Source: Anthoceros angustus
Taxonomy: Eukaryota > Plantae > Anthocerotophyta
Direction: 5' to 3'
DNA: 64,000 nt
NCBI GenBank assembly: GCA_010909165.1
Contig: MU008152.1
Location: forward strand, 62,001-126,000
Shown one piece after another: positions 1 through 61,149 of this stretch (positions are counted from its first letter, which is position 1; each line of letters starts with the position of its first letter). The notes under the pieces are model-generated. The model worked only from the letters and a program-made list of their open reading frames with translations. It was not told the DNA's origin and ran no database searches. The position numbers and the translations under genes were made by a program.

Positions 1-1404
1 TTTGTTCCACAATTGCGTAGTCGTACACTCCGAAAGGGAGGGAAGTGAATGGGTGTGCTAATTCGGTGATGTTCCAGAGGTAATATGCCTCACCAGTGGG
101 CGGCCGCACTGTATTCGGTGTCACATCGATTCTGCGCCTGCCTCACACAAGCTCAATCACTCGTCAGATCCCTCCAAATCCGGAACATTTCAAACGAAGA
201 TGCCAACCGAACTTCAGGGGTGCGCCATTACATACTTGGTTCCTGCTGGGAGAGTGGCGTTTAGCTCGCAAAAATAAACGTAGCCATAGATTCGCTTGAC
301 ACCCGCGAGAATCCCTTTGGAATAGCTGATTCGAGGACCTGTAAGCGCAGACTGCATGACACGGCTTGGAGGCAAGTCGGCTGCAAGGTTATTCTCAATC
401 TTCTGGTTCGGATAACGTGGTGCATAGATGCTCCTGGTGTTGGAGCCAGGGCTTGCAACCACAGGGTTCCACATTCGATCGTAGTAATCGTGCGGGAACC
501 TGGATGTGAGCAGCAGCCATCAGGACTCAACACCCTGTCACAGCTTGTCAGCAATCTGGAATGAATGTTGGACATTGCAAGCAGGTACCTGAGAGCCCCA
601 CGTTCTTTGGCTCCGAAATTCTCCCTGGCCAGCGTCCTGAGCAGCACGGTGGCGGGCTTCTTGAAACGGTCTACGTAAGTCCCATTCGCCTGCGGCCGAA
701 GCTCCAATGCGTTGATGAAAGGAGTGCTGCGGTCGTCTATCCTGATGAGGCAAACGCTCATCCTGGTCCTGGATGTCTCCGTCCCCACGACCACCTCAGT
801 CCAGACGGGGTCATCCATTCCCGTGTCGATGCTCACTTCGGTCCAGACCGTGCTGTCCACGCCCAGCTGCAGGCAGCGGGGTTCGACATTGCTCAGCTTT
901 GATGCCTGGAGCTAGAATTCTGGACGTGCCAAATGTTTGAGAGCATACAGCACCTGAAATCGGATGAAGGCATCGGCAGGATTCGTTTGATTCGTGTAAT
1001 TGCCGAAGTAGAACCAGGCGCGGACGAGGTAGACGGTAGCCGGGAGCACCGAAATTTGGAAGCAATTCTTTCTGGGAGTGGACGATGGCGGGAAGTGGCG
1101 CAAGGTGAGCAAGTGGTGGCTCCGGTTTGCAGCCTGGCTGACGACGGATGCTCTGAGGCCAGTGGAGATGTAGCGCTCGTCGCTGGTGTAGACGAGGGTT
1201 GTGTTGAAGTCACGGGACGTGGAGTTTGCCATAGCGCCGCAGTCGATGTTGATGAAACTCCCTGGATATGGAGACATTCAAGAATTCCAAAAAGCTTGCT
1301 TACAACCTTCAAGAGTAGAAATAAAATTGTATGAGAAGGGTTCGCGACAAACCTCGTGTTCGCTGAGCAAGGAGGGCAGCAACAACCAGAATTAGCTGCC
1401 ACAT
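1..1404 (-). CDS. Malectin-like-domain receptor-like kinase (RLK1), 5' part only; runs off the left edge
   Basis: Signal-peptide exon 1404-1353 (MWQLILVVAALLAQRTR). Next exon SFINIDCG...LRHFP...KNC...[12 protein letters not shown], then DSTVW...SVCLIR...PFINALELR, then FPHDYYDRMW...LPPSRVMQSA. GT-AG introns lie at the same positions as in the paralogs in this window. Confidence 0.9.
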
Positions 1405-5563: not shown

Positions 5564-7592
5564 ATGACCTGGGGTGCGTCTGGATCCTTTCTGGGACTCT
5601 GTTTCCTTGCCCTGTCGCCGCTTCTGTGCTCCAGAAGCGAAGCTAAGCTTGAAGGACTTGGTGAGCTCTCATTTGGGAGGCTGCAGCTGGACAGTCTGCC
5701 CCTCGGGTTTCTTGTTTTCAAGTTGTACAACTCTGCTTGGGAGTTTGAGGCGCTACAGGAGGAAATCCGGATATTGCAGGCCTGCAAGTGCGCATGCCTA
5801 GCCGGATTCCCCAGACTGATGAAAATTTGTCGTGTCTGCAGACAAGCAGCAGCTGCAGCAGTTCGAATTTCAGCCGTGGGAGTTGGCCAAGCTGCCATGG
5901 GTCGGTGGGAGATTTGGGTCGAGGTCGTCCCAGGCGGGATTCGTCCGGAAATTGGTGGCAGACAACTCACCCATCTTGACGTCCCCGGACTGGAGTCGCT
6001 ATGAGTGGGTGAAAGAGACGGTGCGCAGGAGTAGGACCCGAGCTGACCAGATTGGTGCCCTTTACGACACCAGGGCAGGGGCTTTCTGTGCCTGGCTGAA
6101 ATCGAAGGACGTAGCTCCGGGATCCAGCACCGCCGAGTTGGTTAACGAGTTTGCAGCATCCAGTCCGGTCGTCTCGCTGGGCTTTGGCAGCCCAGAGTAC
6201 TACCTCACTCTCAAGGCACGTAAGATTTCACAATTGTCAAGCGCTTTGTGTTCGGCATAATCTGCAATCTGCAGACTAGTACAGCACATGACAGCCTAGG
6301 GCGTTCCGGTTCTAATCGATGTGGGAGCTTGTGTACAGGTTGGGACACCAGCACAAGAAACACTGCTCATCATAGACACTGGAAGCGAGCTGACATGGGT
6401 GGAGTGCAGGCCGTGCAATACGTGCCTGAGCAACATGACTTTCGACCCAACGAAGTCGTCATCTTACTCGGTGGTGTCATGCTCTGATGCCCTCTGCACA
6501 AACCTAACGGGCGCACACTCGGGCTGCGATAAGTCAGTCCAGGAGTGCCAGTTCCAAATTGTGTATGGGGATGGCAGCGCCACTCTTGGGGATGTGGCAA
6601 CGGACGTGGTTGCCACCCAGCCTGATGCCGCTGGAGGTACTCACTTCAAAGCTTTTCTGTCATATACATGTTTCCATAATGTCATCACGTGATCATTGCT
6701 GTACTAGCCTTCAAAAGCGCTCTCAATCCAGCACCAGTGCCTTGCATGCAATCGGCGGCACAACTGACAATGAATCCGGAATGTTGCAGTCACCGAGGGA
6801 GCCTCAGACCAGAAGCTCGTACTGGGATGCGGCCAGTACACACAACCAGGGATGGAGCTGGGAGCATCCGGCCTAATGGGGTTAAACAAAGGGCCTCTCA
6901 GCTTTGCCAGCCAACTGGGCGTCAAGAAATTTTCTTACTGCTTGCCGGACCGCTTTACACAGAACGCAAGTACTAGTCAGGGCTACATCTACTTCGGCGA
7001 TCTACCAGAACAGGTGAACGCCAGCACTGGGCTGGAGTGGGAGCGCACTCCTATGGTCACCAACACCCTTCTGAGTAAAAGTTTCTACTTCCTCGGCGTC
7101 ACAGGCCTCAGTGTGGGGGGCAAGCCGGTGGACATCCCGCAGTCTGCCTGGTCCATCGACAATGTCACGGGGAGGGGAGGTGTGCTCTTGGATTCTGGAA
7201 CTACCATTCAGTTTTTGAGGACGGACGTATATGCCCCGCTCAGGACGGCGCTTGAGGCACAGACGGTGGGGCTGGAGCTCAACAGCTCGGCTGAGGCGGA
7301 GTTGGGCATCGGCCCCTGCTACCACGTTGCTGACGCCTCCAAGTTGTCGTCCTCAGTGCCCAACATCACCGTCCATTTGCAGGGCGGCGTAAATTGGGAG
7401 CTGCCGATTGGCAACTACCTCTGGCCCTTCTCCCGCGAGCGCGCCGTCTACTGCTACGCCTTTATTTCTTCCTCACGCTCCTTTTCGATCTTTGGCAATC
7501 TGTTTCAGCAGAACTTCGTGATCGAGCACGACTTAAGTAGGAGCATGTTCTCCATCTCCGGCGTTACAGACTGTAGTTTGCAGGCGGATTAA
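5564..7592 (+). CDS. Secreted A1 (pepsin-like, nepenthesin/CDR1-type) aspartic protease
   Basis: Exons 5564-5660, 5842-6215, 6339-6636 and 6790-7592 join in frame. Signal peptide, EYYLTLKVGTP, catalytic IIDTGS and LLDSGT, Cys-rich insert, FSYCL, IFGNLFQQNF. Intron 2 requires a GC donor. Confidence 0.92.
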
Positions 7593-9229: not shown

Positions 9230-12200
9230 ATGTGGTGGCCTCTGCTATCTCTTGTAGCAGCAGCTCTTGCCTTGGAGAGTTCGCAATCCATCTGTGCTCA
9301 GCAAGGTGACAATGCAATCGTAGAAAGCCGTCGTCCCAAGCAGAGCTGCAGAAGTAGACCTGTGTACAGAAGAGCTTGTAAGTTGTATTACGTACTGGAT
9401 GCTGACGGAATTCATGTCTCTCCACAGTGCTTGGGAACAGGGAATTTCTGAGCTTGGACTGCGGCGGAAACAACAGCAATGGCTTCATCGACGACAACTT
9501 GCCTGACATACGATGGCAAGCAGACAGCGATTTTGTGCCCACGGGGAGTGTCGGCAAGGTAGCAGATGCCACACAAGTGTCAGCTCAGTTTCAGAGCGTG
9601 AGGTACTTTCCAGCAACCTCATCGCCAACCAAGAATTGCTTTCTTCTGCCGACCACTCCGCCCAACAACTATCTCATCAGAGCTGGCTTCCTATACGGGA
9701 ACTACGATGGGCAGGAATCCTCCGACATTCACTTCCAGGTGAGCTCGCCCATCGCCCAGCAGACTGGTCCAGGAGCTGACTCCCGAGTTCCAATGCATGT
9801 TGGGTGCACATGAATCTTCAGCAATCCATCTGCAACGTACTTGCCAGATTTCTCTTGACAGCACGCCGTGGGTGGACGACGTGGCCATCAATGGGCTATT
9901 GGCCACCACCACCAGCACGGTTTCCTACTTCGAGGCCATCACTGCTCCCACTCAAAACTCTACGCTGAGTGTCTGCCTCATCAGAACAGGCCCCTGCACT
10001 CCCTTCATCAACACGCTGGAGCTCAGGCAAATCGGGATAGGGGGTTACACCGGCAGGCTTGGCGACCTACGTGCCAACTTGCGGCTCGTGAGCAGGATCA
10101 ATTTTGGGGAACGGCACGCCCTCTCTCCATTGCGGTGTGCACAATTGGAACCTTCAATACCTTAGTCCTCACCATGTCGCTCAAGAAACACGCTTTCATC
10201 ACTTCAGCGAACGTTGCTGTGGTGCCAGGTACCCTGCTGACCCAGTGGACAGGATATGGCCCTCGGATGTGGATTCACTTCCGGGTGTGGGAGGCATCCC
10301 TGTCACAGCTGGGCCTGGATATTTCAACACCAAACCACTACCCGAAGTCATTCCAGGTGCCATCATGCGGTCAGGCATCATGAGCCCCAAGGTGACCTAC
10401 ACTCGCCCTGTAGAGATCGGAGCAGACATTTTCACCATTTGCGGCTGCCAGGAGCTGAATTCCTCCTTGGGGCCTCTGGACAGGTGACAGGAACCCGTTA
10501 GTCATGTATCGAATGGAAGATTTGTCCGTGTTGGAACTCTCCTGCTTAAAGGCTGTCGTTGAACGATGTGCAGAAGGGTAATCGACATCGAATTTTCGTC
10601 GGGCAGCTTTCAAGATCGTTTTTCTAACCAGTTGCTCCATCCTTACTCGGATTTCACCATCAACGCCTGGGGATACACAGTGGGGGCTCCCACAGGACAA
10701 GGAAACTCTTCCTATTCTGTTACTGTGACAAGAAATCCCAACTCCACACTAGACGCACTTGTGAACATTGACGAGTTGTATTATCTTCAGAGGCACCAGA
10801 GTGGTACAAATCCTGTAGATGGTAGGTTGATTCCAAGGCTTCCTTCTGAAGACCTGCATCTGCGTCATCTGGCAAGTTGTTGTTGTTTTGTCGCAAATGT
10901 TGCCTCCTGTGCCGTGCAGTGCATGCTTTGGCTGTGATCAAACGCACCTTCAACTTCAGCTACTGGGTCGGAGATCCCTGCAAGCCGGTTCCATGGGACG
11001 AGCTTTCCTGCTCAACCTCGGATGGCGCTACAGATGTCAGAGTTACTTCTTTGTGAGTTCACGAGCGAAGCCTGCCTCATGAAGCTTAGAACTCGGCCTT
11101 CAGACTCTGAACGAAGCGGGGATGATAACTTGCTTTGCAGGAACCTGTCAGGGAAATATCTCACGGGCCTTATACCTGTGTCCAACTTTACAGCCCTCAC
11201 TTCCTTGACAACCATGTGAGTAATGTTCCCTGTATGCTTGGCAAGGGAGCTCCAATGCAGACTGCTCATGATACAGTAGTGGATTGACCAGTCTGAGCGT
11301 GGATTCGATGTGCAGCAATTTGAGCAACAACAGTTTTTCAGGACCTCTACCACAAAGTTTACAGAACCTCACGGATTTAACAGTCTTGTATGGCCAGCTC
11401 TGCCATACATGCCCTCATGAGGGACCAGCGGATATTGTGTTGCATTTTCGCTTGAGAATATCTGGTGGTTCCTAGCTGGGGAACCATAACTCACATGAAA
11501 GTACTGCAGGAATTTGGCAAACAACCAACTCACTGGATCGTTGGAACCCTGGCTGCAACATCTCACAAATCTGTCAGTAACAACCTCAGGACTACATCAT
11601 TTGGTGCAGCTGCTTTTTTTGGACACTGTTTCTTTTACTGACGAGTCTTCTAGCACTGACCAAAGAGATGTCTTGAGCAGAGACGTCTCAAACAACCTGC
11701 TGGATGGGACCTTCCCAGCTACCCTCGTCAGCAATTTAGGATCGAAATTCAGGTTGGTGCCCGTTGAGACAATCCTCTAGACTTCGTGTACCAGAGCTTC
11801 CATGGACTAAGATGCGTGTTGTGTCCTACAGGTACTCTGGAAATCCACTTCTACAATGCTACCCGGTAAACAATGCTGTGTGTCCCGTTCCTGGACTCTT
11901 TCCCCCAACCCCGCAGAACACTCAACCCACGAGCCCCCAGTCCAGCAAGTTGAAAATTGTGCCTATTGTGGCCTCTGGCGTTGGTGGAGTTGCCGTAATC
12001 GTTGTCATCGTAGTTGGAGTGACCTTGTGGTACACCAAGATGAGGGACGGCCGATGTGCCACCTTTAATCGCCATAGTGGCTCTTTCAAAAGAGGTATCT
12101 GTTCAAAGACTCTCACACTCTCATCGTCTAAAGTCTGTCAGGAAAATGATGGTGAGTTGCTACACGTCGCTGGGGAAGCAGCTGAGATAGTTTGTAAACC

Positions 12201-13729
12201 AGAAGAAGTTGATGTCAACGTCGTTTTAGTTCCAGGTCACATCCTTGTGCGAGGAAAAGAAGTGGGTAACCACTTCACTCCAGAAGCTGTGATAAAGGCT
12301 ACCAACAACTTTGCACAAAAGCTTGGGGAAGGGGGTTTTGGCCCTGTTTACTATGGCATGCTTCAAAACAAGCAAGAAGTGGCAGTAAAGACTCTGTCAG
12401 GAAACACTCGTCAAGGATCGAAGGAGTTTTACAATGAGGTGGGATCTGTTCTCTGGGTTATATATAGGTGCAGCCTGGGTTATAAATGCCAGGCTACTGA
12501 ACCTTTCCTCCTATGTAATGTGTAGCAGGTTGCTCTTTTATCTACTGTTAGCCACAAAAACCTGGTGAGCCTGGTTGGCTACTGTAACGACCCACCTGAA
12601 CTGAAACTCTTGTATGAGTTCATGCCTGGAGGTGACCTGCGGCAGAGATTGTACGGTCAGTGAAATCTCTTTGATAAACGTGTGGCTTTATGTCTCTAGA
12701 GGGTCATTCGTGGAAAGAACTCACTGACTACAAACGTTGTTGACATGTGAAGGTACAACTTGTGCACCTCCATTGAGCTGGCAGCAGAGGTTGAACATTG
12801 CCTTGGATGCTGCCAATGGTAAGCAGCTGGGTACATCCACATGGTCTTTAGGTCAAGGCTGTCCTCTATTGCAGCCGAACATCCATGAGCTGCTGGCTGC
12901 TAATGATCATAACTTGATACATGGATTCCAGGCATCCTGTACCTCCACGAGGGATGTAACCCCTCCATCATCCACAGGGACGTTAAGACAAGCAACATTC
13001 TTCTCACCAGTAGTATGGAGGCAAAGTTGGCAGACTTTGGGATCTCGAAGTTGAAAAGCGAGGACAAGAGTCATGTCACCACCAGAGTGATCGGGACACC
13101 AGGGTACCTGGATCCTGAGTAAGTAGTGCGGCATCCTCATATGTGCCATCATGTTGCTCACAAGTCTACCGTTCTCCTGGATTTCACACTCCGATGCGCT
13201 TGCAGGTATCAAGTATCAGGTTTCCTAACCCACAAATGCGACGTTTACAGCTTCGGGGTAGTACTCCTAGAAATTCTGTCTGGGCGGCAAGCTTTGCTTC
13301 CTGATACATTCTCCACAGCCGATCGCTTCATTGTGCAACGGGTAAGCATGAAAACATTGTCACTGACGATGGGGACCCACTAGTATCTCCAATTCGGATT
13401 CGGCACTACATTTGATTGTTAGAACCTGACCTTTGGCTGTGCAGGTGAAGACTGCGATAAATGCTGGAAGCGTGGACATGGTGGTAGACCCGAATCTGGG
13501 AGGGCAATACCCGGCAGAATCTCTGTGGAGGCTTGTGGAGCTTGCCATGCGTTGCACAAGAACTACCGGGTCAGCAAGACCTAAAATGCGATGGGTAGTG
13601 AAGGAACTATCCCAAATCGTGGAGAAGGCTCGCAATCCGCGTCCCACGTCCTCAGACTGCTCCGCTGAATATTGCGGTGATGAACCACTTTCGCCTGGGA
13701 CAGAAGATGACCAACCCACAGCTCGATGA
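9230..13729 (+). CDS. Malectin-like/GDPC/LRR receptor-like kinase, LRR-I type (RLK2), about 17 exons
   Basis: Signal peptide [27 protein letters not shown], four LRR exons and [23 protein letters not shown]. Kinase motifs [37 protein letters not shown]. Stop at 13729. Confidence 0.93.
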
Positions 13730-13779
13730 CAGCCAATTGCTTCACTGTGAAAGGCAAATGGCGCCAGGAATACAGCTCA

Positions 13780-14270
13780 TGGATGTTCGGCTGACCTCCA
13801 CACCGACTTCACCTTGAAGGATCCTTGCAAACCCGAATCCACCACCGCTAACAAGGTTCCAGTGTTTCGAGACGAAGGCAAGAGAAGACGAGGACTCTCA
13901 CCCTTTCCACGATGAACCTGTATGGGCCTCAAGCTTGCGGAATAGGCGGCTGTCAACACAAGATCTCCGACACCACCACTCCGAAACTGTAGACATCGCT
14001 CTTGTCGGTGAGCATGCCAGTTGTCTCGTACCTGCGACCACCCGTCACCATTAGCATCTGCAGAAACCTTTCCTTTTGTTCCCTGTATGTAGCCACCTTG
14101 AAGACAGAAACTCACTCGGGATTTAGGTGTCCAGCGTACCCTTGAAGGCACCATGGTCATCACGCTTGTTTGTCCATCGTGTGTGAGCTTAGACAATCCA
14201 AAGTCCGCCACTTTGGATCCTTGTTTGCTGTTCCAGACATTATTGCCGCTCTTCACATCCTCATCCATGA
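13780..14270 (-). pseudogene. Degenerate RLK kinase fragment (subdomains VIb-XI, introns retained)
   Basis: [35 protein letters not shown] and the following [17 protein letters not shown] exon align to 19490-20040 of RLK3. Frameshifts and deletions are present. Confidence 0.85.
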
Positions 14271-14524
14271 AGGAATTTTGATTGCTGCTGCTCTTGCTGT
14301 GTGGGCTGAAGCTTAGAGGACCAACTGATTGTCCCACCACTGAGGGAGTATAGACATAAGTAGACCGCTTGGTACCATTATTACCCCAAGTTACCGTTAC
14401 AAAAGCCAACAAGTTGAGCATCATAACATAAAGCATAATCATAGCGTAAGCCCATGTTCACCACAAAAGTTGACAAACATAGTAGAAGACATCATGTGGA
14501 AGATTGCCACATTGCAACCATGTG

Positions 14525-14960
14525 TTGCAGCCGTGTTATGGACTTCTAGGCGAATCTCCATGACGATACAAGGACCTATACATTGAATCTTACGACTAGA
14601 GTGACTCCCTACGGTACTTACCAGTATGGATACCCAAACCAAACGATTCCGGCGGATCTTCTGGTAATGACATTCACACAATGTACTGATCCCGCATGGA
14701 TTTGCCCCCGCTTCTCAAGGCCGTCGAGGCTTACCAGATTGTCCCGCTGGCTTCGCCAACCAATCCCCCAAATGGTGAGTTCTCGGTAGAAGGTCGCCAT
14801 CCTTTGCTCATTTTCATGGGAGTTGGTCCGCTAACAATATGGTACACTAGTTGTCTTGCTCACTGCGCAGTCATTGCGCTGGCTGCCGTAAAGCAAGCTC
14901 TCAATTGTAGTCGGTGGACTGGGTATCCGTGCAATCCCGTGCCCTGGGATGAAACCGTCT
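14525..14960 (+). pseudogene. Degenerate malectin/GDPC-region exon pair of an RLK
   Basis: RVMDF*AN...DLPPLLKAVEAYQIV, an intron, then VIALAAVKQALNCSRWTGYPCNPVPWDE. Contains a stop and a frameshift, and is cut off at ~14960 by repeat/TE sequence. Confidence 0.85.
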
Positions 14961-19215: not shown

Positions 19216-22200
19216 TCAGTAAGCACGGGGAGCTTCATCCGCATGGAAAATTTGGGAAGGCTGGTCTGTGCTGTATTTGAAGTAGCCGGAGTTGCCGGAG
19301 TGGCCGGGCCTGACGTCCGTGGGATTTAGGGTGATGTTGTCGCTGTATGTCCCGCCGCTGGACTGAGCCCATTCTCCTCTTTGTTCTCCGAACTCCAGTT
19401 CCAGAGTTTGGGTGATATCGGTCACCACTTTGCTCATGCCAGGTCTGGCAGAGGCAGCAATTGGCACGCAGCTCATGGCGATTTCCGCAAATCTCCACAC
19501 CGACTCTACCTTGTAGTCTCCTCTGAGAGCCGGGTCCACCACCGCTGCAAGGCTTCCAGTGTTCATGGCGGCTCTCACCTGTGACTCAGATTGGCACGCA
19601 CAACCATGAGTTCCTGTTGTAGATGTTGGAATGGCAGGCAAAGAGAGGATGAGGACTCTCACCCTTTCCACGATGAACCTGTGAGGACCTTCCGGTAAAA
19701 TGGGCGGGTGCCCACACATCATCTCTAACAACACCACTCCGAAACTGTAGACATCGCTCTTGTCGGTGAGCATGCCAGTTGTGTTGTACCTGCGAACACC
19801 CCCACCACCCACCATTAGCAGCTGCAGAGGGTTCCCTCGACTTGCGCAACCGGGTATGTCGAGCAGGTGAGGAAGCAACTCACTCAGGGTCCAGGTATCC
19901 TAGCGTGCCCTTCACCATGGTCATCACGTGGGTTTGTCCATCGTCTGTGAGCTTGGACAACCCGAAGTCTGCCACTTTGGCTTCTAGTTTGCTGTTCAGG
20001 AGGATGTTGCTGCTTTTTACATCCCTATGAAAGATTGCTGGACGGCAACCATGGTGCAAATATTCCAGACCTGCCCACGTAAGGCAGTCAGTACCAGCTT
20101 TTATCTCCCAGGATGCAAGGCAAGCCCAGCGGGAAGGTTTGGATAGTCCAATGGATTACCTCTGGCAGAGTCTAGGGCTATCTGCAGTCTCTGTCTCCAG
20201 TTCAGTGGAGAGTGCTGTGCGGCTTTGCTACCTGCAAGCATGAGGGAGCACCACGAGAACAATGAACTCACAGCAATTGATGCACTGAATTGAGAGTTCG
20301 AAGCAAAGAAAGGTGGTTGCGAAGTGACAAGCAATGGTTGAGGGCCAAAGCTGGCACTTACTGTACAGGCGGGCTCGAAGATCTCCTCCAGACATATACT
20401 CGTACATAAGAATGAGTTCCTCCCCTTCCGCACAGTACCCAACAAGTGACACCAGTTTTTTGTGGTGCACCGTGGACAGAAGATCGATCTAGGAAACGAT
20501 GATGAGAAAACCGTCAGCCCTCCTGGAAATGCATCTTGAAAGCAAGCTTCAGTCTGGATGTCTTCAGGATGCCTGCAACATGTTGAGTACAAGGTACCGT
20601 CTACACCAGTCTGAAATACCTCGTTGGAGAACTCGTTAAGCCCTTGCTGGGACTTCCCGGACATGACTTTTACGGCAACCTCTTGCTCCTTGAGCAGCCC
20701 ATAATACACTGGTCCAAATCCGCCCTCCCCGATTTTCCTTGCAAAGTTGTTTGTAGCTTCCTTGACGGTGCTCAGAGCATATGGGTGAGCTTTCCTACGA
20801 GGATGATGTGATGGGGTCGACTGTGGATAAACTGGAGAGGCTGCAGCACAGTTCACATAGCAAAATACAGAATGTGACATCGATATCCACGAGTCGCAAC
20901 CTGTTGTCAGTTCGGCCGTGCTACTTACCACCGTCTGAAAAGGTAGCTAATGGTGAAGGAGGATTGGTCCCTTGGGTGGTCGGTTTCTTCCAGCAGCAGC
21001 ACCAAAGGACGACGAAAAGTATCAGGAGGAGGACCAAGACCCCAGCCACAACGCCACCAATGGCCGGCCCAAGGGAACTTTTGCTCTTGGACGTGGTGTC
21101 GTTCCCGTTCCCTCCTGGTGTTATTGCCGGTGGTGGTGGAGGGCTCGTTGTTGCAGCGGGTGGTGTACCTTGCGGGCAAATTGCATTCGCTGAAGGAACA
21201 CACTGAAGCTGAAGATTACCAGAATACCTACGAAGGAACAACCAACCTTTGTTTGGCGATCAACAGCACAACCGACCTGGACGTGGACGACGTGTGTTCA
21301 CAACTGAAAAATGTCTAAAGCCCAGCAAGCTTGAAGGTTGGAACTGTTACACTAGTTAGCCCTCACCTGAAGTCACCGATCTTGGCGAAGTAGGTGGCAG
21401 GGAAGGAGCCACTCAGGTTGTTGTTACTCACATCCCTGGACCACGGGGGAAGCTCGTTCATCAATTTGCCAAACTTATCATAACAAAAGTCACATTCGTG
21501 AAGACATTCCACATGGACACGAAGTCCAAGTCGCACTTACAGAGAGCTCAAAGAAGTAAACTGTGCGACCCAAGTGGGCAGAGGGCCAGAGAACTGGTTG
21601 TCCGATAGGTTCCTGTCAGTTGCAACCAGACAACATCATCAGTCTGGGCCACATGCCCTGGCTTCCAAGCACAATTATCAAGCTCCCGTACAGCAGTTCC
21701 CTTTGCCTGTTGTTATACAAACAGACTTGGCAGAGTCACAGGGCATGGCTTACAGGCTTTTGAGACCTGCCAGGCCTGAAATGGCTGTCGGAATCGGGCC
21801 GCTGAGACTTTTGCCCGAAAGATCCCTGCAAATATTGGCAACAATGTGACACAGTCAATTGCTGTCTTGTGCACCAAATTACATGCTGGCAGAGCAGGAT
21901 GAGCTGGGTAGGACTTTACAAGGCTGTGACTGCATTGTTGACACACGTGATTTCATCCCATGGCACAGGACTACACGGATCCCCAGTCCACCGGCTGTAG
22001 CTGAGAGCCAACTTTACCGCAGCCAGCGCAGTGACTACAGTGTAGCACCCATATCATGAGCAGACTAAGCCATGGGAACGAGCAAACAGAGGGCCTTGTG
22101 CAGGAACTCACCATCCTGCGCATTTGTACGCGAACCCAGCCCGATGATCTGGTACAGCTCAAATGCATTCAAAAGCGGGGGCAGATCCGTGCTAGCATCA

Positions 22201-23693
22201 GGAAGCAAAGTGAACACCAGTTCAGACTTATCCACAGGAACATGGTAGGTTTTTCCTCCAAACTGGAATGTAGTGAAAGGAGGGACAATGGCAGTGATAT
22301 TCAGAACATAGCCCGGTGGAGCCTTGGAGAGGAAATTCGGCTGGAAGTCTATTACCCGACTGCAAAACCCCACACCAGGCATCAGCAGCTAGCAATGGTG
22401 AGTTGCAGAAGAGAAAGAAGGAGCCATGGTCCGAGCTGAAGGCACCTGAGTCCTGAAGTCGCAGTGTTGTTGATCTCGGCAAAGAACAAGAAGGCGTAGA
22501 TTACAGGAGAAGGCGTGTCGTAGACATTCACGGTGACCGTGTAGTTGAGAAGATTGGGATCGGTGACAGCTGACTGCATAACAATGGCGGGAGGATAGTC
22601 TGCCTGATAGCTCCCATTGTTGATTATCTGGTCAAAAGAGTTAGGATACCCAGGTGCAAAAAGGCTGGTGTACGTGGCTCCAGAGCTCTTGGGCAAGGGC
22701 GGCCATATCCGATCGAAGTTATCAAAGGGAAACCTACAAGCACACATACCGTCCATGTGTCAAGGCCGGCCAAGCTGCAGACTGCACTTTCATGCTCATG
22801 GGGATCCTTAAGCTTGCATCGATATCCCACCTGAACGTGGTTGTCTCCTCCCCGAAATTGCGCCGCCTGAGCAGGTTCAAGAGGTTTCTCGAGTCATCCA
22901 AGTTGGCGATGTACGAGAAGCGATTGACCGGCCTGAGCTCCAGGGTGTTGATAAAAGGGTCGCTGCCGTCCAGCCGGATCAAGCACACACTCACGCTGGG
23001 CTTGGTGGTGAGCACCAGGACCTCGTACGTGGAGTACGTGTTCGGAGTGGTGTCGATGGTGACATGCGTCCACACCGTCTCATCCACAGAAAGCTGCCGC
23101 CACACACTCTATCAGATTCCGCACTCCTGCAAAGTGCAAAGCCAAAAATGCGCCTCTCCCAAAGCCGCGGAACATGGACGCAGTACCTGGAAGTTGATGC
23201 CCCCTGCAGGCACCGCGGTGTAGCCCCCGAAGTAGAACCAGGCTCGCACCAGGTACTGCGTGTCGTTGGAGACATCCAGGTCGTAGCAGTTCTTGGCGGG
23301 CGATGAGGCGGGGAAGAACCTGAGCGAGGTGAGATCCGTGACCAGGGCATCTCCCGTGGACGCGGCCACCCCGGTGGAGATGAAGCTCACGTCGCTCAGG
23401 AAGGTGAGATTGGTGTCGGGATGCTTGTACGAGAATCCCGCAGGAGCGCCGCAGTCGATGTTGATGAACCCTGCACACGCCCATTTCAGAATTCAGGGAC
23501 CGGATCCTGCCTGCTGGGCTTCTGGCACCACTGGTGCTGGGCAGCGCGGAAGGAAGGACTGGAGGTTCCAGGAAGCGGCAGCACAGCACCCACCTCCGGT
23601 CTGGGCATCGGCAGCGCGGTGCAGGCTTTGCAGCAGCGCGATGCCCACAACCCACAAAACACCCAGCCTCCGGATTCGAGCGCGAGAATCCAT
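19216..23693 (-). CDS. Malectin-like/GDPC/LRR receptor-like kinase, LRR-I type (RLK3), about 16 exons
   Basis: Exon 1 is 23693-23594 ([21 protein letters not shown]). FINIDCG, WTGDPC, three LRR exons, [23 protein letters not shown]. Kinase motifs [31 protein letters not shown]. Stop at 19216. Confidence 0.93.
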
Positions 23694-24408: not shown

Positions 24409-27400
24409 TCACTTGCTGATGTCACTTGAGTGGTCAGGAGGGGCCTCATCTGCTGCCCCTGACGCCAGTGCCAGAGCCTCCTCCAGACCCACCACCACCT
24501 GGCTCATGCTGGGCCTGAGGGACGGGGCCACTTGCACACAGCTCATGGCTACCTCGGCAAACCTCCACACTGAACCCACTCTGTACTTCTCGAGAAGTTT
24601 GGGATCTACCATCGCCTGCAGGTTTCCGGTGTTTATGGCAGCTGGCACCTGAGGGAGATGGGCGAGAAGCAACCGAGAAGCGTACGAGTGTGAGAGAGGT
24701 CTCAGTGAACATGAGAGAGTGGTCGATGATGGGTCAGTTCGTGTGAGGGAGGTCTGGGCAAGAGAAGGACGATAGGGTGGAACCTGGAATTTCTTGCCTG
24801 TTCTGCGAGCACGTAGGTGGCGTCGTCCTCGGATATGGGTGGCCGCCCACAAAGGATTTCCAGAAGCACAACCCCGAAACTGTAGACGTCGCTCATCTCT
24901 GTCAGCATTCCACTCGTCCTGTACCTGCACGGAGCCGTGAGGCTTTAGGGCATCGTACAAAGATTCCTGTTTGACAAGGATGTTGGTTTGATCCAGGGGA
25001 TGATCCTACTCTGGGTCCAAGTATCCCGTATTTTCCTTCACCATGCCATGGGTTCCTCCGTTGTAACCCAGGTTGGTAAGCTGAAAGCCAGCTAACTTAG
25101 CCTCGAGTCTTTCGGTAAGAAGAACCTTGCTGCTGTTCACCCTCCCGTGGAGAATGGCTGGGTTCCAACCATGGAGGTGTTCCAGGCCTGCTCACAAAGT
25201 TTGAAAGAGTGCATAAGAAAGTGGAACCCGTGCTGTCGCCCTACCTTCCAAGAGCCAACTTAAAAGAAGCGGACAGTTTACCTTTTGCAACGTCGATGGC
25301 AATCTTCAGCCTCTGGCTCCACCTCAGAGGAGCTCGTGTAGTCTTGTCACCTGTATGTCGTTCACCAAAGCGAGCTAGAACATTTAAGCCCCTACATTTC
25401 ACAGACCTAGCGAAACATTACTCAACCGAACAATATCTAATCCACCTCCCCTTCACCGATGGATAAAACATTGGCCCCAACCTCTGGGACAAAACTGACA
25501 AATGAATCCATAGGACAGTTGTCTGGAGCAGGGGGTCAGTTTGCAGGACATACCATATAGATGATCACGAAGATCTCCTCCCGACACATATTGGAACAAA
25601 AGCATAAGGTTCTCGCCTTGTAAGCAGTAACCAATGAGGGATATCAGCTTCTCGTTGCAAACTGTAGCCAGAAAATCAATCTGGCAAAGGCCGTAGTTGT
25701 CCATTAGTCAGCAAACACTTAGTTCCTGACAGCCTCGGCGAATACGCCTAGGCAGCTAAAGGTGAATGGTGATTCCTTACCTCCTCTGAGAACTGAGTCA
25801 GGCTTTCATCGAGCTTTCCTGATAGTATCTTCACTGCCACTTCTTGCGAACTGTCTTTCAGGATTCCATAAAAGACAGATCCAGAGGCACCTTCTCCAAC
25901 CTTGTCAGCAAAGCTATTCGTTGCTTCCTCAATAATTTGTAGACTAAACGCTTGAGCCCTTCCTCTGATTTTAGAAGTATAAGTCATCCTCGAGTCTGGA
26001 GAGACCAGGAATGGACACCCACACGTTACGACTCATGAGAAAATAGTATACCAGCATTCACTTGCTGACAGAAGCGCCCCCCATGACCCATGACGCAGGA
26101 AGGTAAGAGGTACCACCTATGTGCACTTGCGGTATTTCTGACGGATCAGGAGCTTGTAATTTACTCTGGCATGACAGTTTATAAAAACTGAACCAGAATA
26201 CAAGTCCGCCAACAGCAAAAAGGACAAAAATGCCTCCAGCAATGATACCAGCAATGACCCAAATATTGGACCCTAGCTTTCTGACGCTGGACCCTGGTGC
26301 TGAATTTGATGGGAGAGGTAGTGGACTTTGTGTGACTGAAGACGGTGCTGGAGGTGCTGGGGGTGCTGGTGGGCAGGTTGCATTATCTGAAGGCACACAG
26401 TTGAGCTGCAGGTTACCTGAGTACCTGCAGTTTTTCGGTTTCGTAGGTGAATAACCTACTCATTTTTAACAAACGGACTCGTGAAATGACAACCTTATCA
26501 CCTGAATCCAGGGATGTGAGTGACATATGTTGCAGGAAAGCTACCACTCAGCTGATTGTTGGAAACATCCCTGTCAGAGACAACAACGGCTTCAACCACC
26601 AGAGTAGCAAGTTTGATGTTAATGGCACACTCTGAAAAAATAAGAAACAAACAGAAGCCCTACTCACAGGGTCCGCAAGGAGTCCAGGTCTGCAACCCAA
26701 CTTGGGAGGGCACCGGTGAAAGCATTATTCGACAAGTTCCTGGGCTCAGTACAAACCCAGCAACAAGCCCAGCAACGTCAGACTTTCGGAGTTGGACTAT
26801 CAACCTCCCATCACAAGATGAATTTCAACAGCAATAACCAAGCACACTCACAGCAGGGTGAGTGCTCCTAGACCAGAGATTTCCGAAGGAATGGAGCCGT
26901 TGAGGCCCTTGCCTGAAAGATCCCTGCAAGCAAATGCCAAAGAAGTGAGGCCAGCAACAAGCAGAGATACGCCTGGTAACGTAACATCACTTGCCCCCCA
27001 GGAGCCAGAATGAAGCTACTTACAAAGATGTCACTCGATCACTCATGTTACAGTTAAGCTCATCCCACGGTACAGGGAAGCAAGGATCACCAGCCCAGTA
27101 CTCGAGTCCAACAGCAGACTTAAGAGCAGTCAGTGCCGTTACTGTTATGAAGCGAACTGCTGTAAGGAGCAGGAGATGCATAAAACGCAGAACAGGCTAA
27201 AAAGCAGGAACTGTTGAGAAGTCCACCTCACCATCTCCTGCATTTGTACCCGAAACCACATCCAAGACCAGGTAAGCCTCAAAAGCATTCACGATGGGAC
27301 CATCAGCTGAGTTGCTGCTTTTCGTTAGGGAAAACGTCAAATTGTCCATCCTAGCAGGTCCCTGGTAATTTCCCCCAACTTGCACAACAGTGAAATCAGG

Positions 27401-28716
27401 TCCATAAGCAGCTAAGTCCAAGGGGTTGACAAGCTTGGATTCAGCTATGAAGTTGGCCCGGAAGTCCATAACACGCCTGCACCATCCAAGATGGGTGTGT
27501 GATGATAAAACGTGCAGATCAAGGTGCAGGATCCCCGTCATCAAATGCCCCCTATCCCAGATTCTCCATACCTTGTTCGTTCTGGGAAAGAGACAATCTC
27601 AGCGAAGAAGACGCTAGCGTACAGCCTTGGAGCAGCAACATCAGGTGGTGAAGTCAAGAACGTGAGGTCGTTCGCAGCCGTAGCAGCAGATTGCATGACA
27701 ATGCTGGGAGGATTATCCCATTGGCGAGAGGAATTGTAATAGAAGACTTGAAATTCGCTCGGATAACCTGGCACAAAGACGTCATCTCTGACCACGACGG
27801 GCTGCCATTTTCGATCATAGGCATCGTCAGGAAACCTGAAATTGTCACACCAGCGCTGGTGTCAGCCCGGCAAGAAACGCACCAGCCTCTGCAATGTCAC
27901 ACACATGTGTCACACGTACCGGAAAGTCTTGGTTGGCTCACCAAAGTTGCACCGCTGTAACAAAGAGAGGAAGACACTGAACGGGTCTGGGTCTGTGTGC
28001 CGGGCAAGGTAGGAGCCTGGACCGAGGGGCCTGAGCTCGAGAGTATTGATGAAAGGAGCACTGCTTTCCTCTGTGCGGATCAGGCAAACGCTGAGTCTCG
28101 TCTTGTTCGTGAGTATGATGGCTTCCGGCTCTTGCAGCAAGTTCTCGGTTGTGTTGATGATCAGTGTGGCCCAAACGGCGGAGTCCAGGGCCAGCTGGAA
28201 GGTGAGGACTGAGGAGGCAGGTGGGTTGACGTAGTAGCCGAAGTAGAACCGAGCTCGGATGAGGTACTGTGTGTTGATGTGCACAGGCAACACGTAGCAG
28301 TTCTTCGTGGGAGTGGAACCTGAAGGGAAGTGCCTGAGTGTCCTGAGATCGTCTTCCGTCCGGTATCCGTCTGTCTTCACGAGTGCTGCGAATCCGGTGG
28401 TGATGTACTTGTCGTACTCGTAGATAATCCCTGTCTCTTGGCTGACGAAAGGCACGGTGCGGCCTGTGTCCCCGGGGTCAGACCCACAGTCGATGCTGAT
28501 GAAGCCTACACATTTCAGATCGTTGTGTGTGAGTTGCATTGTTGCACAGACCCTGAAATGCCACAAGACTTCTCCGGATCGCGTCCCATCTTGCTTACCT
28601 GCTGAGGCGGAGGGGCGAGCAGATGCACAGAAGATGGGCAGCCGAAGGACCAGCATCCACAGGACCGATGCAACCAGGAGCTGGTCCCGGCTGAGAAAAA
28701 GATTTGGCTTCTCCAT
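24409..28716 (-). CDS. Malectin-like/GDPC/LRR receptor-like pseudokinase (RLK4), 15 exons, ~941 aa
   Basis: Exons 28716-28599, 28505-27920, 27835-27572, 27476-27232, 27159-27024, 26923-26852, 26739-26668, 26570-26502, 26424-26117, 25995-25781, 25680-25554, 25350-25282, 25187-25010, 24924-24798 and 24648-24409 sum to 2826 nt and stay in frame. The catalytic loop reads HGRVNSSK and the DFG position reads GFQ. Confidence 0.9.
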
Positions 28717-30510: not shown

Positions 30511-33500
30511 CTAACGGGCAGAAGGATCTTCACTGGCATAGAAGATTAAGGACGGCTGGTCGGGAGTTGGGTCTGGGTCATCTCCGCTGAAATCCGTCCC
30601 TCCAGCTGTTTGTCTTCGCGACTCCAGGGCCAAACTGCGGAGCTCACTCACCACCGTCTGCATGCTTGGCCTAGACATGCTGGAAGGCGACACGCATGCC
30701 ATCGCGATGTCCACGTATCTCCACACTGATACCGCAGGGATGTCGGCTTCTCGAAGAACCGGATCCACCACTGATAGCACCGCACCATTGTTCATTGCAG
30801 ACTTCACCTGCGCAGCCGATTCGGAAAAGTCCACGTCTCAATGGCTTTCCACTTCCACAAACCGTGCATTGCTTGCAACTGGTAACTTGCAAGTTTGGAT
30901 CACCTCGTCTACAATGAACTGGCTTTGTTGGATAATGGGCGGATGTCCGCACAGGAGTTCCAGCAGCACAATCCCGAAGCTGTAGACGTCGCTCTTGTGA
31001 TTCAACAGCCCAGTTCTGTTGTATCTGTCACGCTCCCAATATGCCAGCTCAAGACACCAACACAAATCCTAGCCAGCGTTGCTAAACTCTCAGTGGCCAG
31101 TCTACTTACTCAGGATCAAGGTATCCGCAGGTTCCTTTCACCACTGTCACCAGGTTTGATTGCCCGTCTGTCAACTTGGAAAGGCCGAAATCAGCCACTT
31201 TGGCCTCCAGATTCTGGTTCAGCAGAATGTTGCTGCTCTTCACATCCCTATGAATGATGGCTGGATTGCACCCATGGTGCAGGTACTCTAGACCTGCTCC
31301 CACCACGTACTGGCCATGTTCAGACGCCATCCAGTCGTTGCAGAGCTGGGGAAATGACATACTTCCATGGACTCATGAGCTCACCTTTGGCAGCATCCAA
31401 GGCTATCTGCAGCCTTTCACTCCAGGTTAGCGGGTGCTGGAGACCTGGAAGTCACACACTCGTCCGGAGTGAAGTTGTTGATCCCTGTAGTCAGGAATCA
31501 GTGTGCCCAGAATGCCCGCGCATTCACTTACTCTGCAGATTCATTTCTGGACAAGTGCACATAGGATTACCTTGCAGGCGATTCCGAAGGTCCCCTCCTG
31601 ACATGTATTCATAGAGCAGAATAAGCTCCTGTCCTTCCTCGCAGTAACCCAAAAGGTTGACCAGTCTCTTGTGATGTATACTTGACAAAAGGTCAATCTG
31701 TTGGAAACGCAGCACTGAGGAACATGCCTGAAGACGCTCAAAAGGACCACTTTGTTCACACTGTTAATCCAATGGTCCGCTCACCTCGTTGAGGAACTCG
31801 CCAAAGCCTTGCCGTGTCGTTTGAGACATGACTTTTACGGCAACTTCTTGTTGGCCGTCAAGAATCCCATGGTAAACAGGTCCAAATCCACCCTCGCCGA
31901 TTTTTTTTGAGAAATTGGTGGTGGCAACCTTTATAGCTTGCAGCGTGAAGGGTTGAGTTCTGTTTCTTGGTACACGGTGAGCATTTGTTGTTCTGATGAG
32001 ACCTGCCACACTCAAGCCTCAACATCTGTTAAAACTATGCCAGAAAGTGGAGGCTTCTAAAGAGGGATGCAGTATAGTAGTGATTACCAACGTCCATCAA
32101 TGGGGATGGCGGAGTTCGAATTTTCACTGATTTGTCTGCTGTCGCACACATATACCATGTCAGGAGTCCACCTGCAACAAGAAGAACCACAATTGCCCCA
32201 GCCACGCCACCAATGATTGGCCCAGTGGATGTTTTTCCACTTGTCTTGGATGGGGGCGGTGGAGAAGGTGCTGGTGACTGTGGGCAAGCAGCGCTGCTGG
32301 TAGGAACGTCAACGCAGATAAGCAGAGGATTACCAGAATACCTGCGGTGACCACAAATAGGAGCTCCAGGCAATTACAAACAGATGAAGTCTTGCCGAAT
32401 TTGCTCTGAACAGGGGGAAATTGGCTCAAGCTACCATATGTGCTGACCTGAAATTAGAGATCGTAAGGAAGTATGTGGCAGGGAAGGAACCACTCAGGTT
32501 GTTGTTAGAAACATCGCTGCGGACATCACCAAAGACCACGTCAGGCCAAATGGCTAGAATGACAGTGGCAACTGAGCCTTAGCTACTGCTGAAAGCCAAT
32601 GAGAGTTTAGGGGCAACTTACAGTGCCTGCAAGTACAGGTTCCCCACCCAACTCGGAATGGGGCCGACGAGTTGATTCTCTGATAGGTTCCTGAGTCACA
32701 TGTACGTTTGAATGAGGCTAAGAACAAGACACATAACATTCCTGGGTGAAACACTCCGTGTGGAGGTTGGAGTATTTGTACAGACAGGCTGGTGAGTGCT
32801 GTAAGGTTTGAGATGTCTGACGGTATGGAGCCGGTGAGATTCTTCCTGGAAAGGTTCCTGCAGGAAACGGTGACCCAAGAGCCCTTTAGTAGGAGTTGCA
32901 ACAGTATTACAGCGTGTACATCTTTTAAACGTGCTTTTCTGCTTCAAGAGTTCCTCTACTCGTTAATGAGCAACGTACAGTGATGTCACTCGATCCTGAG
33001 TGCAGCCAAGCTCATCCCATGGAACAGGGTCACATGGATCGCCAACCCATTGAGTGTAGCCAAGAGAAGTCTTCAGAGCCGTCAATACAGTCACTGTGTA
33101 CAAAAGCCAAACACAATATTACTAACTGCAAGGAAAAACAACGCTAGCAGAACTGGGAGGAGACGTACAGTGTAAGCAAACGTGGAACAGCATACCATCT
33201 TCAGGATCTGTTCCTGGAAGCACATCTTGGATGATGCAGAACTCCAATGCATTCATGATTGGGTCGTAGGAAGAACTAGGATCCCTGCTGAGGTTGAAAA
33301 GCAGTATCAGCGAGTCACTGGCAGCCATCTCAAAGTCATCGGTTCCAGATTGCAGGACAGTATAGAGGCCATATGCTGTCAAGTTATATATCTCGATCCC
33401 CAATGTAAGAGGCATGAAGTTGGAAATGAGGTCCATAACTCTACTGGCAGCCAACACCCGGTGAACAAGGTGAGCACACCTAAGACATCAATTAGACAGT

Positions 33501-34822
33501 GTACAGCAGGGAAACGATGGAAACTCCAGGAATCTTGCAAATCTCACAACCATTGACCTGCTTCCTGCTGGCAAACCTTCAAGCTCCGCAAAATAGAGCC
33601 GAGAATAGAAACGTGAGGCAGGAAGGGGATTAGTAAATTCAACAGCGAATAGGAGCCAGCCGGGTGAGGTGACAGCGGATTGCATGACCACGCTGGGAGG
33701 AAAGTCGCTGGAAGTTTGCGACGTCGCGGTGAAGTTCATGACTTGATTGGGGTAATTGGGTGCGAAGATGGGCTTCCAATCCTCTCCAGGGGAATCCATT
33801 GGCGGCCATATCCGGTCAAAACTGTCTTGAGGATACCTGCAATCTTGCCAGACGTTTTCACCATTACAGCTTTTCAATCTTGAGCTGAAGACCTGACAAT
33901 GAGCTAGCAGGCCATGTTTAGTTGCAAGCTTGCATGACCTGTACCTGAAAGTTTTATTCTGAAATCCAAAATTGACCCTGAAGACCATGTTGAGGAAGCT
34001 AGAAGAGGGATAGGAGGCATTGATATTCTCAATGTAAGACTGTATCATGATTTCTCTGATCTCCAGGGAGTTGACGAAAGGAGCGTCGGTATCTGCTGTC
34101 CTGATGAGGCAGAAGCTGACACTGGGCTTGGCTGTCCAGACCATAGCCTCCTTCCAAGAGATCGAATCTGGGGAGGTGGTGTCGATGGACACATTTCTCC
34201 ACACCGTGGCATCCAAAGCCAGCTGCCAGAGTGCGGAAACTTGTGAAATCCTCACAGCCACAAACTGAACATTCACAGCTCTGCCCGACCAGAATCGCAA
34301 GGATGCACACACCTGAAACGAAATGGTGCCAGACAACGGAGCAGGAATGTAATTGCCGAAGTAGAACCAAGCTCGGAGAAGGTACTGCGTCTCGTTCTGC
34401 ACGGGAATCACATAGCAGTTCTTGACAGGGGTGGAAGACGCTGGGAAATATCTCAGCGTCTTCAAGTCATCGGTGACCAAAGTGCTAGTGGTTGTGTTTG
34501 CGATTTCTCCTGTCGTGATGAAATTGTCGTTGATGAAGACGTAATTGGTGTTGGGATTGGTGTACGGTGTCGATCCAGGAGCAGAGCCACAGTCGATGCT
34601 AAGGTCTGAACAAGCCCGAGCACAATCACGCGCAACATTCGCCCATCTTCAGCGCCAGATTACTCGTTAATAACAAAATGCAACCAGCAACGATCTCATC
34701 TGCTGCAGACCTGTCGGGCGCACTTGCGCGGAGACGAAGGGGCCGGGGCCGCCTTGAAACAAGCTCTGCCACGAAACGCAATTCCAGAAAAGAAGGAGAA
34801 TTCGAAGCAGTCGAATCCCCAT
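30511..34822 (-). CDS. Malectin-like/GDPC/LRR receptor-like kinase, LRR-I type (RLK5), about 16 exons
   Basis: Exon 1 is 34822-34711 ([18 protein letters not shown]). LSIDCG, WVGDPC, three LRR exons, [23 protein letters not shown]. Kinase motifs [31 protein letters not shown]. Stop at 30511. Confidence 0.93.
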
Positions 34823-60450: not shown

Positions 60451-61149
60451 TCACAAGGCAGGCTCCTCCAGAATCGCAGTCACCAGATCATTGATCCGGG
60501 GAAAGGCAGCTCGCTCACTTAGCTGATTCTGCGTCCACAACAAGAGCTTAAGCAGGCTAGGGAGCTTCGGATCCTTCTCGTGGCTCTGGCTTGTAAGGAT
60601 GGCCGCGTTGAGCTCACTGGCAGTCTTCTGCCGCTGCGACATATCCAGCAGATCTCCCACGGGGCAGGACGCGGTATCCTCGAAGGCGAGCAAGGCCACA
60701 GTCCGCTCCAACTCCTCCAAGAAGGCGTGATTCTCCTCCCCCCGGGGCGCCAATTCCTCCTGCGCGAACTCCAGGGCCTCCTCCACCTTACCCCCTCGGA
60801 TAAGCTCGATAAGGCGCTGCTGCTGCAGGTGGAAGAAGAGGTGCGGGTTGGTGTCCAGGATCTCGGGGTTGAGGTCGTTCACGCGCTCGATGGCGTCCTG
60901 GACGTTCCCGCACTGCACAGCCTTCCGCACCGCCATGCGATCTGTGATGGTGGCCAGATCGATGTCGGGGTGCGTCCCACTCTCCTGCTGGAACTTCTGC
61001 GCTGCCTCCACGAAGCCCTCGGTGACCAGGTAGTTCATCACCAGCTTATTGAGATCCTCCTTGCGCACGCGCACCGCTGCCAGCTTCTTCTCCCATTCCT
61101 CACGCGTGATCACCTTCTTGCTGCAGGACGACTCCCCGCCCCGCCCCAT
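60451..61149 (-). CDS. GID8: GID8/TWA1 homolog (LisH-CTLH-CRA subunit of the GID/CTLH E3 complex), intronless
   Basis: Single 232-aa ORF: KKVITREEWEKKL, LNKLVMNYLVTEGFVEAAQKFQQESG (LisH), LFFHLQQQRLIELIR (CTLH), LEELERTVALLAF, QRQKTASELNAAIL (CRA). Confidence 0.95.
   Translation of the reverse strand: MGRGGESSCSKKVITREEWEKKLAAVRVRKEDLNKLVMNYLVTEGFVEAAQKFQQESGTHPDIDLATITDRMAVRKAVQCGNVQDAIERVNDLNPEILDTNPHLFFHLQQQRLIELIRGGKVEEALEFAQEELAPRGEENHAFLEELERTVALLAFEDTASCPVGDLLDMSQRQKTASELNAAILTSQSHEKDPKLPSLLKLLLWTQNQLSERAAFPRINDLVTAILEEPAL

Follow-up and report, generated by a model that had tools for sequence, protein, structure and literature searches.

Receptor pseudokinases form an abundant and well-known class of plant proteins (PMC13519141, PMC10317173, PMC11259431), and plant kinomes are reported to contain 12-17% pseudokinases, which are markedly expanded in the IRAK/RLK group (PMC13519141). 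Two members of subfamily X of the leucine-rich repeat (LRR) receptors, BIR2 and BIR3, are receptor pseudokinases that keep BAK1 inactive (PMC10317173, PMC10868138). NFR5/LYK5 with the active NFR1/CERK1, and MDIS1 (LRR-VI) with MIK1/2, are cases in which a ligand-binding receptor with a dead kinase signals via an active partner (PMC11572979, PMC7158045). For the SymRK family, a preprint that contains no analysis of catalytic-motif loss reported lineage-specific tandem expansions, including an Anthoceros clade (clade IX) (10.64898/2026.05.08.723708). Here we describe RLK4, a gene for a predicted receptor pseudokinase on the reverse strand of a 64,000-nucleotide stretch of Anthoceros angustus DNA (assembly GCA_010909165.1, contig MU008152.1, positions 62,001 to 126,000). 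This whole stretch is referred to as the window, and all positions are counted from its first letter. Three catalytically intact paralogs, RLK3, RLK5 and RLKA, lie in the same window and served for comparison. RLK4 is probably a selectively maintained receptor pseudokinase of the LRR-I / SymRK family, and it lies alongside active paralogs in an old head-to-tail array.

The gene was rebuilt from three-frame translations and splice signals. The rebuilt model reproduced exactly the originally predicted frame, in which 15 exons join over 2826 nt (941 codons) and the terminal stop is the sole stop. Exon boundaries and intron phases agree with those of the three intact paralogs. Domains were assigned by a Pfam search carried out exon by exon (cut-off E<=0.01), by translation and by alignment to the paralogs, with the following result (all on the reverse strand):

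24409-28716, reverse strand: RLK4, a complete malectin-like/LRR receptor pseudokinase gene of 15 exons, from ATG to stop (rebuilt model and Pfam)
28716-28599, 28505-27920, 27835-27572, 27476-27232 and 27159-27024, reverse strand: exons 1-5 (rebuilt model)
26923-26852, 26739-26668, 26570-26502, 26424-26117 and 25995-25781, reverse strand: exons 6-10 (rebuilt model)
25680-25554, 25350-25282, 25187-25010, 24924-24798 and 24648-24409, reverse strand: exons 11-15 (rebuilt model)
24796-24797, reverse strand: GC donor of intron 14, CAG/GCAAGA (comparison of splice sites in the four genes)
28599-28716, reverse strand: exon 1, with the start codon and a hydrophobic N-terminus resembling a signal peptide (translation, judged by eye)
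27232-28505, reverse strand: exons 2-4, malectin-like domain (Pfam PF12819 in exons 2 and 3)
27024-27159, reverse strand: exon 5, with the GDPC motif at 27091-27080 (translation and paralog alignment)
26502-26923, reverse strand: exons 6-8, three LRR units in exons of 72, 72 and 69 nt (translation and paralog alignment)
26117-26424, reverse strand: exon 9, Pro-rich stalk, putative transmembrane helix (about 26264-26181) and juxtamembrane segment (translation and alignment)
24409-25995, reverse strand: exons 10-15, pseudokinase domain (Pfam and conserved-column count)

The order of malectin-like domain, LRR block, transmembrane helix and kinase fold is the one expected for the family with a malectin-like domain (MLD) and LRRs. 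PF12819 matched exon 2 with E=8.4e-32 and exon 3 with E=7.8e-9. The GDPC motif stands between the malectin-like domain and the LRRs in its full family context (27097-27050, WAGDPCFPVPWDELNC), for which the consensus WxxDPCxPxxWxxxxC has been given (10.64898/2026.05.08.723708). The LRR region is 57-66% identical to that of the paralogs, and the putative transmembrane helix is a hydrophobic segment of 28 residues. Kinase profiles matched exons 10, 11 and 14, and no Pfam kinase profile matched exon 13, the exon of the catalytic loop and the DFG region, at E<=0.01. In both the ectodomain and the kinase tree, RLK4 groups with RLK3, RLK5 and RLKA (support 98-99 and 95, respectively), and the family members among which this clade is nested come from liverworts, a lycophyte and angiosperms. 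By domain layout and phylogeny, RLK4 is placed in the malectin-like-domain LRR receptor kinase family (LRR-I / SymRK family).

RLK4 shares with the LRR-I members SymRK, IOS1 and SHRK1/2 a putative signal peptide, the malectin-like domain followed by the GDPC motif and three LRRs, a transmembrane helix, the kinase fold and tandem clustering, and its multi-exon structure is common to its paralogs. It differs in its kinase, from which the Asp of HRD, the Lys and Asn of the loop and the Asp of DFG are missing, and in lacking the C-terminal P[ST]AR tail of the paralogs and several family members. With BIR2 and BIR3 it has in common a transmembrane LRR receptor architecture with a pseudokinase domain and a plausible role as a regulator of active receptor complexes. 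However, a large malectin-like domain and 3 LRRs take the place of their five LRRs, the subfamily is LRR-I rather than LRR-X, and the active-site lesions are different. Assignment to the BIR type was rejected, as the ectodomain and the tree place RLK4 with LRR-I relatives, and the resemblance to BIR2 and BIR3 lies only in the likely mode of action. Compared with NFR5/LYK5 and MDIS1, RLK4 has an ectodomain of another class, and the partnership that is demonstrated for those receptors is conjectured for RLK4.

The kinase domain carries lesions at residues on which phosphotransfer is expected to depend. The motif positions given in the original prediction were all verified against the sequence and are listed below:

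25126-25149, reverse strand: catalytic loop HGRVNSSK, HRDVKSSN in the paralogs (paralog alignment and IRAK1 structure 6bfn)
25081-25089, reverse strand: GFQ where the paralogs have DFG, with loss of the Mg-binding Asp (paralog alignment and IRAK1 structure 6bfn)
25880-25897, reverse strand: G-loop GEGASG, GxGxxG retained, GEGGFG in the paralogs (alignment)
25829-25840, reverse strand: VAVK, beta3 Lys retained (alignment)
25642-25659, reverse strand: CNEKLI at the position of HHKxLV (translation)
25026-25010 and 24924, reverse strand: GYLDPE kept, the last base of its Glu codon being the first base of exon 14 (translation)
24873-24890, reverse strand: DVYSFG kept (translation)

Within the catalytic loop, the catalytic Asp is replaced by Arg, the loop Lys by Asn and the loop Asn by Lys. 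A phmmer search of exon 13 against solved kinases paired HGR with the HGD of IRAK1 (6bfn), N with the loop Lys, K with the loop Asn and GFQ with DFG, so that the HGR at 25149-25141 lacks the catalytic Asp present in both the IRAK1 HGD and the paralog HRD. The alpha-C Glu, in FSEE, is retained. The G-loop had been counted among the altered motifs; it does differ from GEGGFG, but its glycines are not lost and GxGxxG fits. The remaining lesions of the original list were confirmed, and the list proved incomplete. An alignment of RLK4, the paralogs and 17 other active family members, in which columns at least 90% conserved were taken as conserved, revealed further changes in the hinge (YEYM to FQYV), in HHK (to CNE), in HHGC (to H-GW), in the P+1 loop (GT to EN) and at the Lys preceding SDVYSFG. 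Furthermore, the tail (24409-24480) is short and without the terminal P[ST]AR motif, which ends RLK5, RLKA and several family members of other plants; RLK3 ends in the variant PRAY. A protein is a pseudokinase by sequence if at least one of the VAIK Lys, the HRD Asp and the DFG Asp is missing. RLK4 lacks the HRD Asp and the DFG Asp and has the VAIK-type Lys (VAVK). Since one missing motif suffices, RLK4 is a pseudokinase by this sequence definition despite its VAVK, and it is predicted to be catalytically inactive.

Relative-rate tests located the acceleration in the kinase domain only, in line with the earlier claim that erosion of the active site is concentrated and leaves the frame undamaged. 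In Tajima tests of the ectodomain, RLK4 had 34-53 unique replacements compared with 43-49 in RLK3 and RLK5 (p>0.3), whereas in the kinase it had 47 against 16 (p=9e-5) and 61 against 12 (p=1e-8) in the paralogs. By kinase part, the counts (RLK4 first) were 25 against 5 in the N-lobe and 17 against 0 from the catalytic loop to APE, while alphaD-alphaE showed no excess (7 against 4). For the C-lobe after APE, the difference was not significant with RLKA as the outgroup (10 against 8 and 10 against 11), and a smaller excess in RLK4 was seen with RLK5 as the outgroup (12 against 3, p=0.02). The end branches of the maximum likelihood trees gave the same picture, with 0.65 for both RLK4 and RLK3 in the ectodomain, and 0.78 for RLK4 versus 0.14 for RLK3 in the kinase. 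None of the 55 family-conserved ectodomain columns was changed in RLK4, against 20 of the 72 in the kinase (Fisher p=3e-6); no such kinase column was changed in RLK3 (0/60) or RLK5 (0/60). It was the N-lobe and the catalytic/activation segment, rather than the C-lobe, that held the excess of changed conserved columns.

Selection on the reading frame was examined at the codon level. Where the three paralogs are identical, RLK4 alone differed at 16% of codon positions 1 and 2 versus 44% of position 3 (p=7e-6). Single-omega codon models (IQ-TREE) were uninformative for a single branch and were set aside for a purpose-written two-omega GY94 model, in which omega is the ratio of nonsynonymous to synonymous rates (dN/dS). 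The RLK4 branch had an omega of 0.19 in the kinase (background 0.13; omega=1 rejected, p=9e-6) and 0.24 in the ectodomain (omega=1 rejected, p=8e-5), values that are rough because synonymous sites are saturated, with 51-73% of four-fold sites different between any two copies. The same divergence shows that the duplicates in the cluster are old. A dN/dS near 1 across the gene, which the original prediction had named as evidence that would speak against it, was thus rejected for both domains on the RLK4 branch of this paralog comparison. Taken together, these patterns support the view that selection has preserved the frame, the sensing domain and most of the C-lobe of the kinase, with the ATP-binding and catalytic parts apparently released or reshaped.

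In the mechanism that we propose, the RLK4 protein would reach the membrane and still bind the ligand of its ectodomain, but would be unable to transfer phosphate. It would work non-catalytically, as a ligand-binding or complex-organising partner, and its pseudokinase domain may interact with an active kinase (for example a SERK-type co-receptor or another family member) by docking to it, modulating it allosterically or being phosphorylated by it. A role as the ligand-binding or scaffolding partner of an active kinase appears most likely. The rate, codon and simulation tests support the part of the original prediction that invoked selection for a non-catalytic role; its more specific parts were not supported. 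Nothing beyond adjacency supports a decoy or brake paired with RLK3 or RLK5, and such a pairing is speculation. Nor is the gene an undescribed system, as receptor pseudokinases are abundant in plants and others exist in the same receptor family.

Several observations weigh against selective maintenance. The in-frame model depends on one GC donor, that of intron 14. The kinase-branch omega of RLK4 was not significantly over background (p=0.26, GY94), and with paralog synonymous sites saturated, omega is averaged over a very long branch. No transcript of RLK4 was found in the databases searched. No ortholog was found either when exon 2 (194 aa) was used as the query against 1.84 billion cluster representatives, where the top-scoring protein was 37% identical and the maximum identity was 48%; nothing closer was present among 5.8 billion word-indexed proteins. 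This absence of matches says little, because the active paralogs too reach only about 35% identity with the 150 proteins fetched with the RLK4 query, and the searched protein collection seems to lack the A. angustus genome and close relatives.

These observations bear on three other explanations. RLK4 could have been an active kinase for most of its history and have been inactivated recently, so that decay is only beginning and the frame is open by luck. The GT to GC change of the intron 14 donor, the loss of the C-terminal tail motif, the failure to find an RLK4 transcript in the databases searched, an omega that averages over a long branch, and the birth-and-death turnover of the cluster, with relics at 13767-14274 and 14496-14953, would all suit such a history. 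We nevertheless consider it unlikely. When neutral drift was simulated over the entire coding sequence, d=0.05-0.09, that is, about 5-9% neutral divergence, was needed to yield the 31-49 excess kinase replacements, and at this level the 941-codon frame stayed open with P=0.014-0.001 (substitutions only, indels ignored). Over the same period no conserved ectodomain column changed, no rate excess arose in the ectodomain or, with the RLKA outgroup, in the kinase C-lobe, and changes at codon positions 1 and 2 were three times rarer than at position 3; the consensus of the GC donor is, moreover, otherwise very strong. It is also conceivable that RLK4 can still transfer phosphate by an unconventional mechanism, given that some atypical kinases formerly classed as dead proved active. 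VAVK, the Glu of FSEE and GxGxxG are all retained, and in the change from DVKSSN to RVNSSK, Lys and Asn are swapped, so that a Lys now ends the catalytic loop. But the catalytic Asp, loop Asn, DFG Asp, hinge Glu and P+1 Gly-Thr are missing together, the failure of exon 13 to match any Pfam kinase profile points the same way, and constraint was released across the whole N-lobe and activation segment, which makes residual activity of this kind very improbable.

The remaining explanation is that the cell does not produce what the model predicts, the locus being silent or spliced otherwise, so that part of the kinase is missing or no protein is made. Intron 14 is one reason to consider it, as its donor is the lone non-GT donor among 59 introns in the four genes, the other 13 of the 14 RLK4 introns being GT-AG, and joining a nearby GT donor to the normal acceptor leads to a frameshift and a stop at residue 871. 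Exon 5 has two candidate acceptors, at 27141 and 27159, and no matching protein or fragment was found among about 15 billion predicted proteins. Functional GC-AG introns, however, usually have an otherwise strong donor consensus, and with position +2 disregarded the GC donor of RLK4 outscores 53 of the other 58. The frame can also be kept by a second, GT-AG solution (donor 24783, acceptor before 24700), which would add 22 residues. Together with the agreement of exon boundaries and intron phases with the three intact paralogs, and with databases in which absence is uninformative as they seem to lack the A. angustus genome, this renders a wrong model quite improbable. Some splice details of the original model were nonetheless revised. 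Its frame stood, but not all introns are GT-AG, and its exon-5 acceptor at 27159 inserts six residues found in no paralog; paralog homology favours 27141, which gives a frame of 2808 nt.

Further predicted pseudokinases occur in the same receptor family. In Marchantia, Mp2g17500 and its M. paleacea counterpart KAG6550962 (P0151 / P0020), annotated as 'hypothetical protein', have VAVI for VAVK, HGD for HRD and EFG for DFG. The two proteins are 94.5% identical between M. polymorpha and M. paleacea and carry the same degenerate motifs, and Mp2g17500 was also recovered as a 931-residue open reading frame on a 4.3-kb Logan contig. Two Logan contigs of run SRR33208241 hold other family members. One, termed L001, has the following gene:

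1273-5491 of L001 (Logan SRR33208241_16421), forward strand: malectin-like/LRR receptor gene of the 15-exon type, with HRN for HRD and HYG for DFG

The frame of this gene is intact from exon 2 on; exon 1 was not modelled convincingly, a trial join giving a stop at the junction. The other contig, L002, has a family member with a canonical G-loop and VAVK, after which the contig ends. No mention of Mp2g17500 or of run SRR33208241 was found in the literature searched. L001 and L002 were considered as orthologs of RLK4 and rejected, L001 being sister to the whole window clade (support 99) and not to RLK4. The M. paleacea protein P0020, considered as a close relative on account of its HG motif, was likewise dismissed, as by kinase identity (35%) and in the trees it is no closer than active kinases.

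The Marchantia and L001 genes are, like RLK4, predicted pseudokinases of this receptor family with intact open reading frames, and they show a similar degree of change. Their kinase end branches measure 0.89 and 0.91 (RLK4, 0.78), and 16 and 17 of the 72 conserved kinase columns are changed (RLK4, 20). Their lesions, VAVI/HGD/EFG in Marchantia and HRN/HYG in L001, differ from the HGR/GFQ of RLK4, and neither is orthologous to it, the Marchantia gene lying elsewhere in the trees. Because the lesions differ and neither gene is an RLK4 ortholog, the three predicted pseudokinases are of independent origin, and predicted kinase loss in this receptor family is recurrent rather than singular. A broader idea is that bryophytes have a recurrent, selectively kept class of malectin-like/LRR pseudokinases (RLK4, L001 and Mp2g17500) that arise repeatedly in tandem arrays, where they would partner or regulate the active receptors without catalysis; we regard this as possible, though rather doubtful. 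No description of such a recurrent pseudokinase layer in the malectin-like/LRR family was found in the literature searched.

The intact paralogs used throughout were modelled as follows:

19216-23693, reverse strand: RLK3, catalytically intact paralog directly downstream of RLK4 (modelled gene)
30511-34822, reverse strand: RLK5, catalytically intact paralog upstream of RLK4 (modelled gene)
9230-13729, forward strand: RLKA, catalytically intact, more distant paralog (modelled gene)

All three have open frames with GEGGFG, VAVK, HRDVK(S/T)SN, DFG, GYLDPE and DVYSFG. The neighbours RLK3 and RLK5 are thus intact and canonical in their motifs, as had been predicted, and so is RLKA. RLK5, RLK4 and RLK3 are arranged head to tail. 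Past the end of RLKA lie two relics of family members, a truncated kinase C-lobe piece (13767-14274, reverse strand) and a truncated malectin/GDPC piece (14496-14953, forward strand), which point to birth-and-death turnover in the cluster. The true dead copies of the cluster are truncated fragments, unlike the full-length RLK4. A further family member is cut off by the start of the window, which holds its N-terminal malectin-like part (11-1289, reverse strand).

The paralogs also differ from RLK4 in one intron. RLK3, RLK5, RLKA and the L002 gene have in common a phase-0 intron of about 90-110 nt in the malectin-like domain, after '..FQ' (23186-23094 in RLK3, 34312-34223 in RLK5 and 9739-9847 in RLKA). 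This intron is precisely absent from exon 2 of RLK4 (28505-27920) and also from the L001 gene. In view of the tree, RLK4 seems to have lost it cleanly; clean intron losses are often ascribed to recombination with reverse-transcribed mRNA. Three genes of other kinds were noted elsewhere in the window:

56594-57409, forward strand: WRKY DNA-binding domain gene (E=6e-28)
6852-7589, forward strand: TAXi-type aspartyl protease gene (E=4e-32)
60454-61149, reverse strand: LisH-CTLH protein gene (E=4e-38)

The SymRK family has been associated with the accommodation of microbes and with cell-wall sensing. Although plants have many receptor pseudokinases, to our knowledge only a few are understood, hardly any of them from outside the flowering plants. 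RLK4 is of a known type, the receptor pseudokinase, and not a new kind of system; what is new is its occurrence in a subfamily and a lineage for which the literature searched holds no prior discussion of such members. It presents a clean case, with the sensing half conserved, the enzymatic half specifically eroded, and adjacent active paralogs as built-in controls. RLK4 may therefore be used to study non-catalytic receptors in a lineage-specific expansion of the SymRK family.

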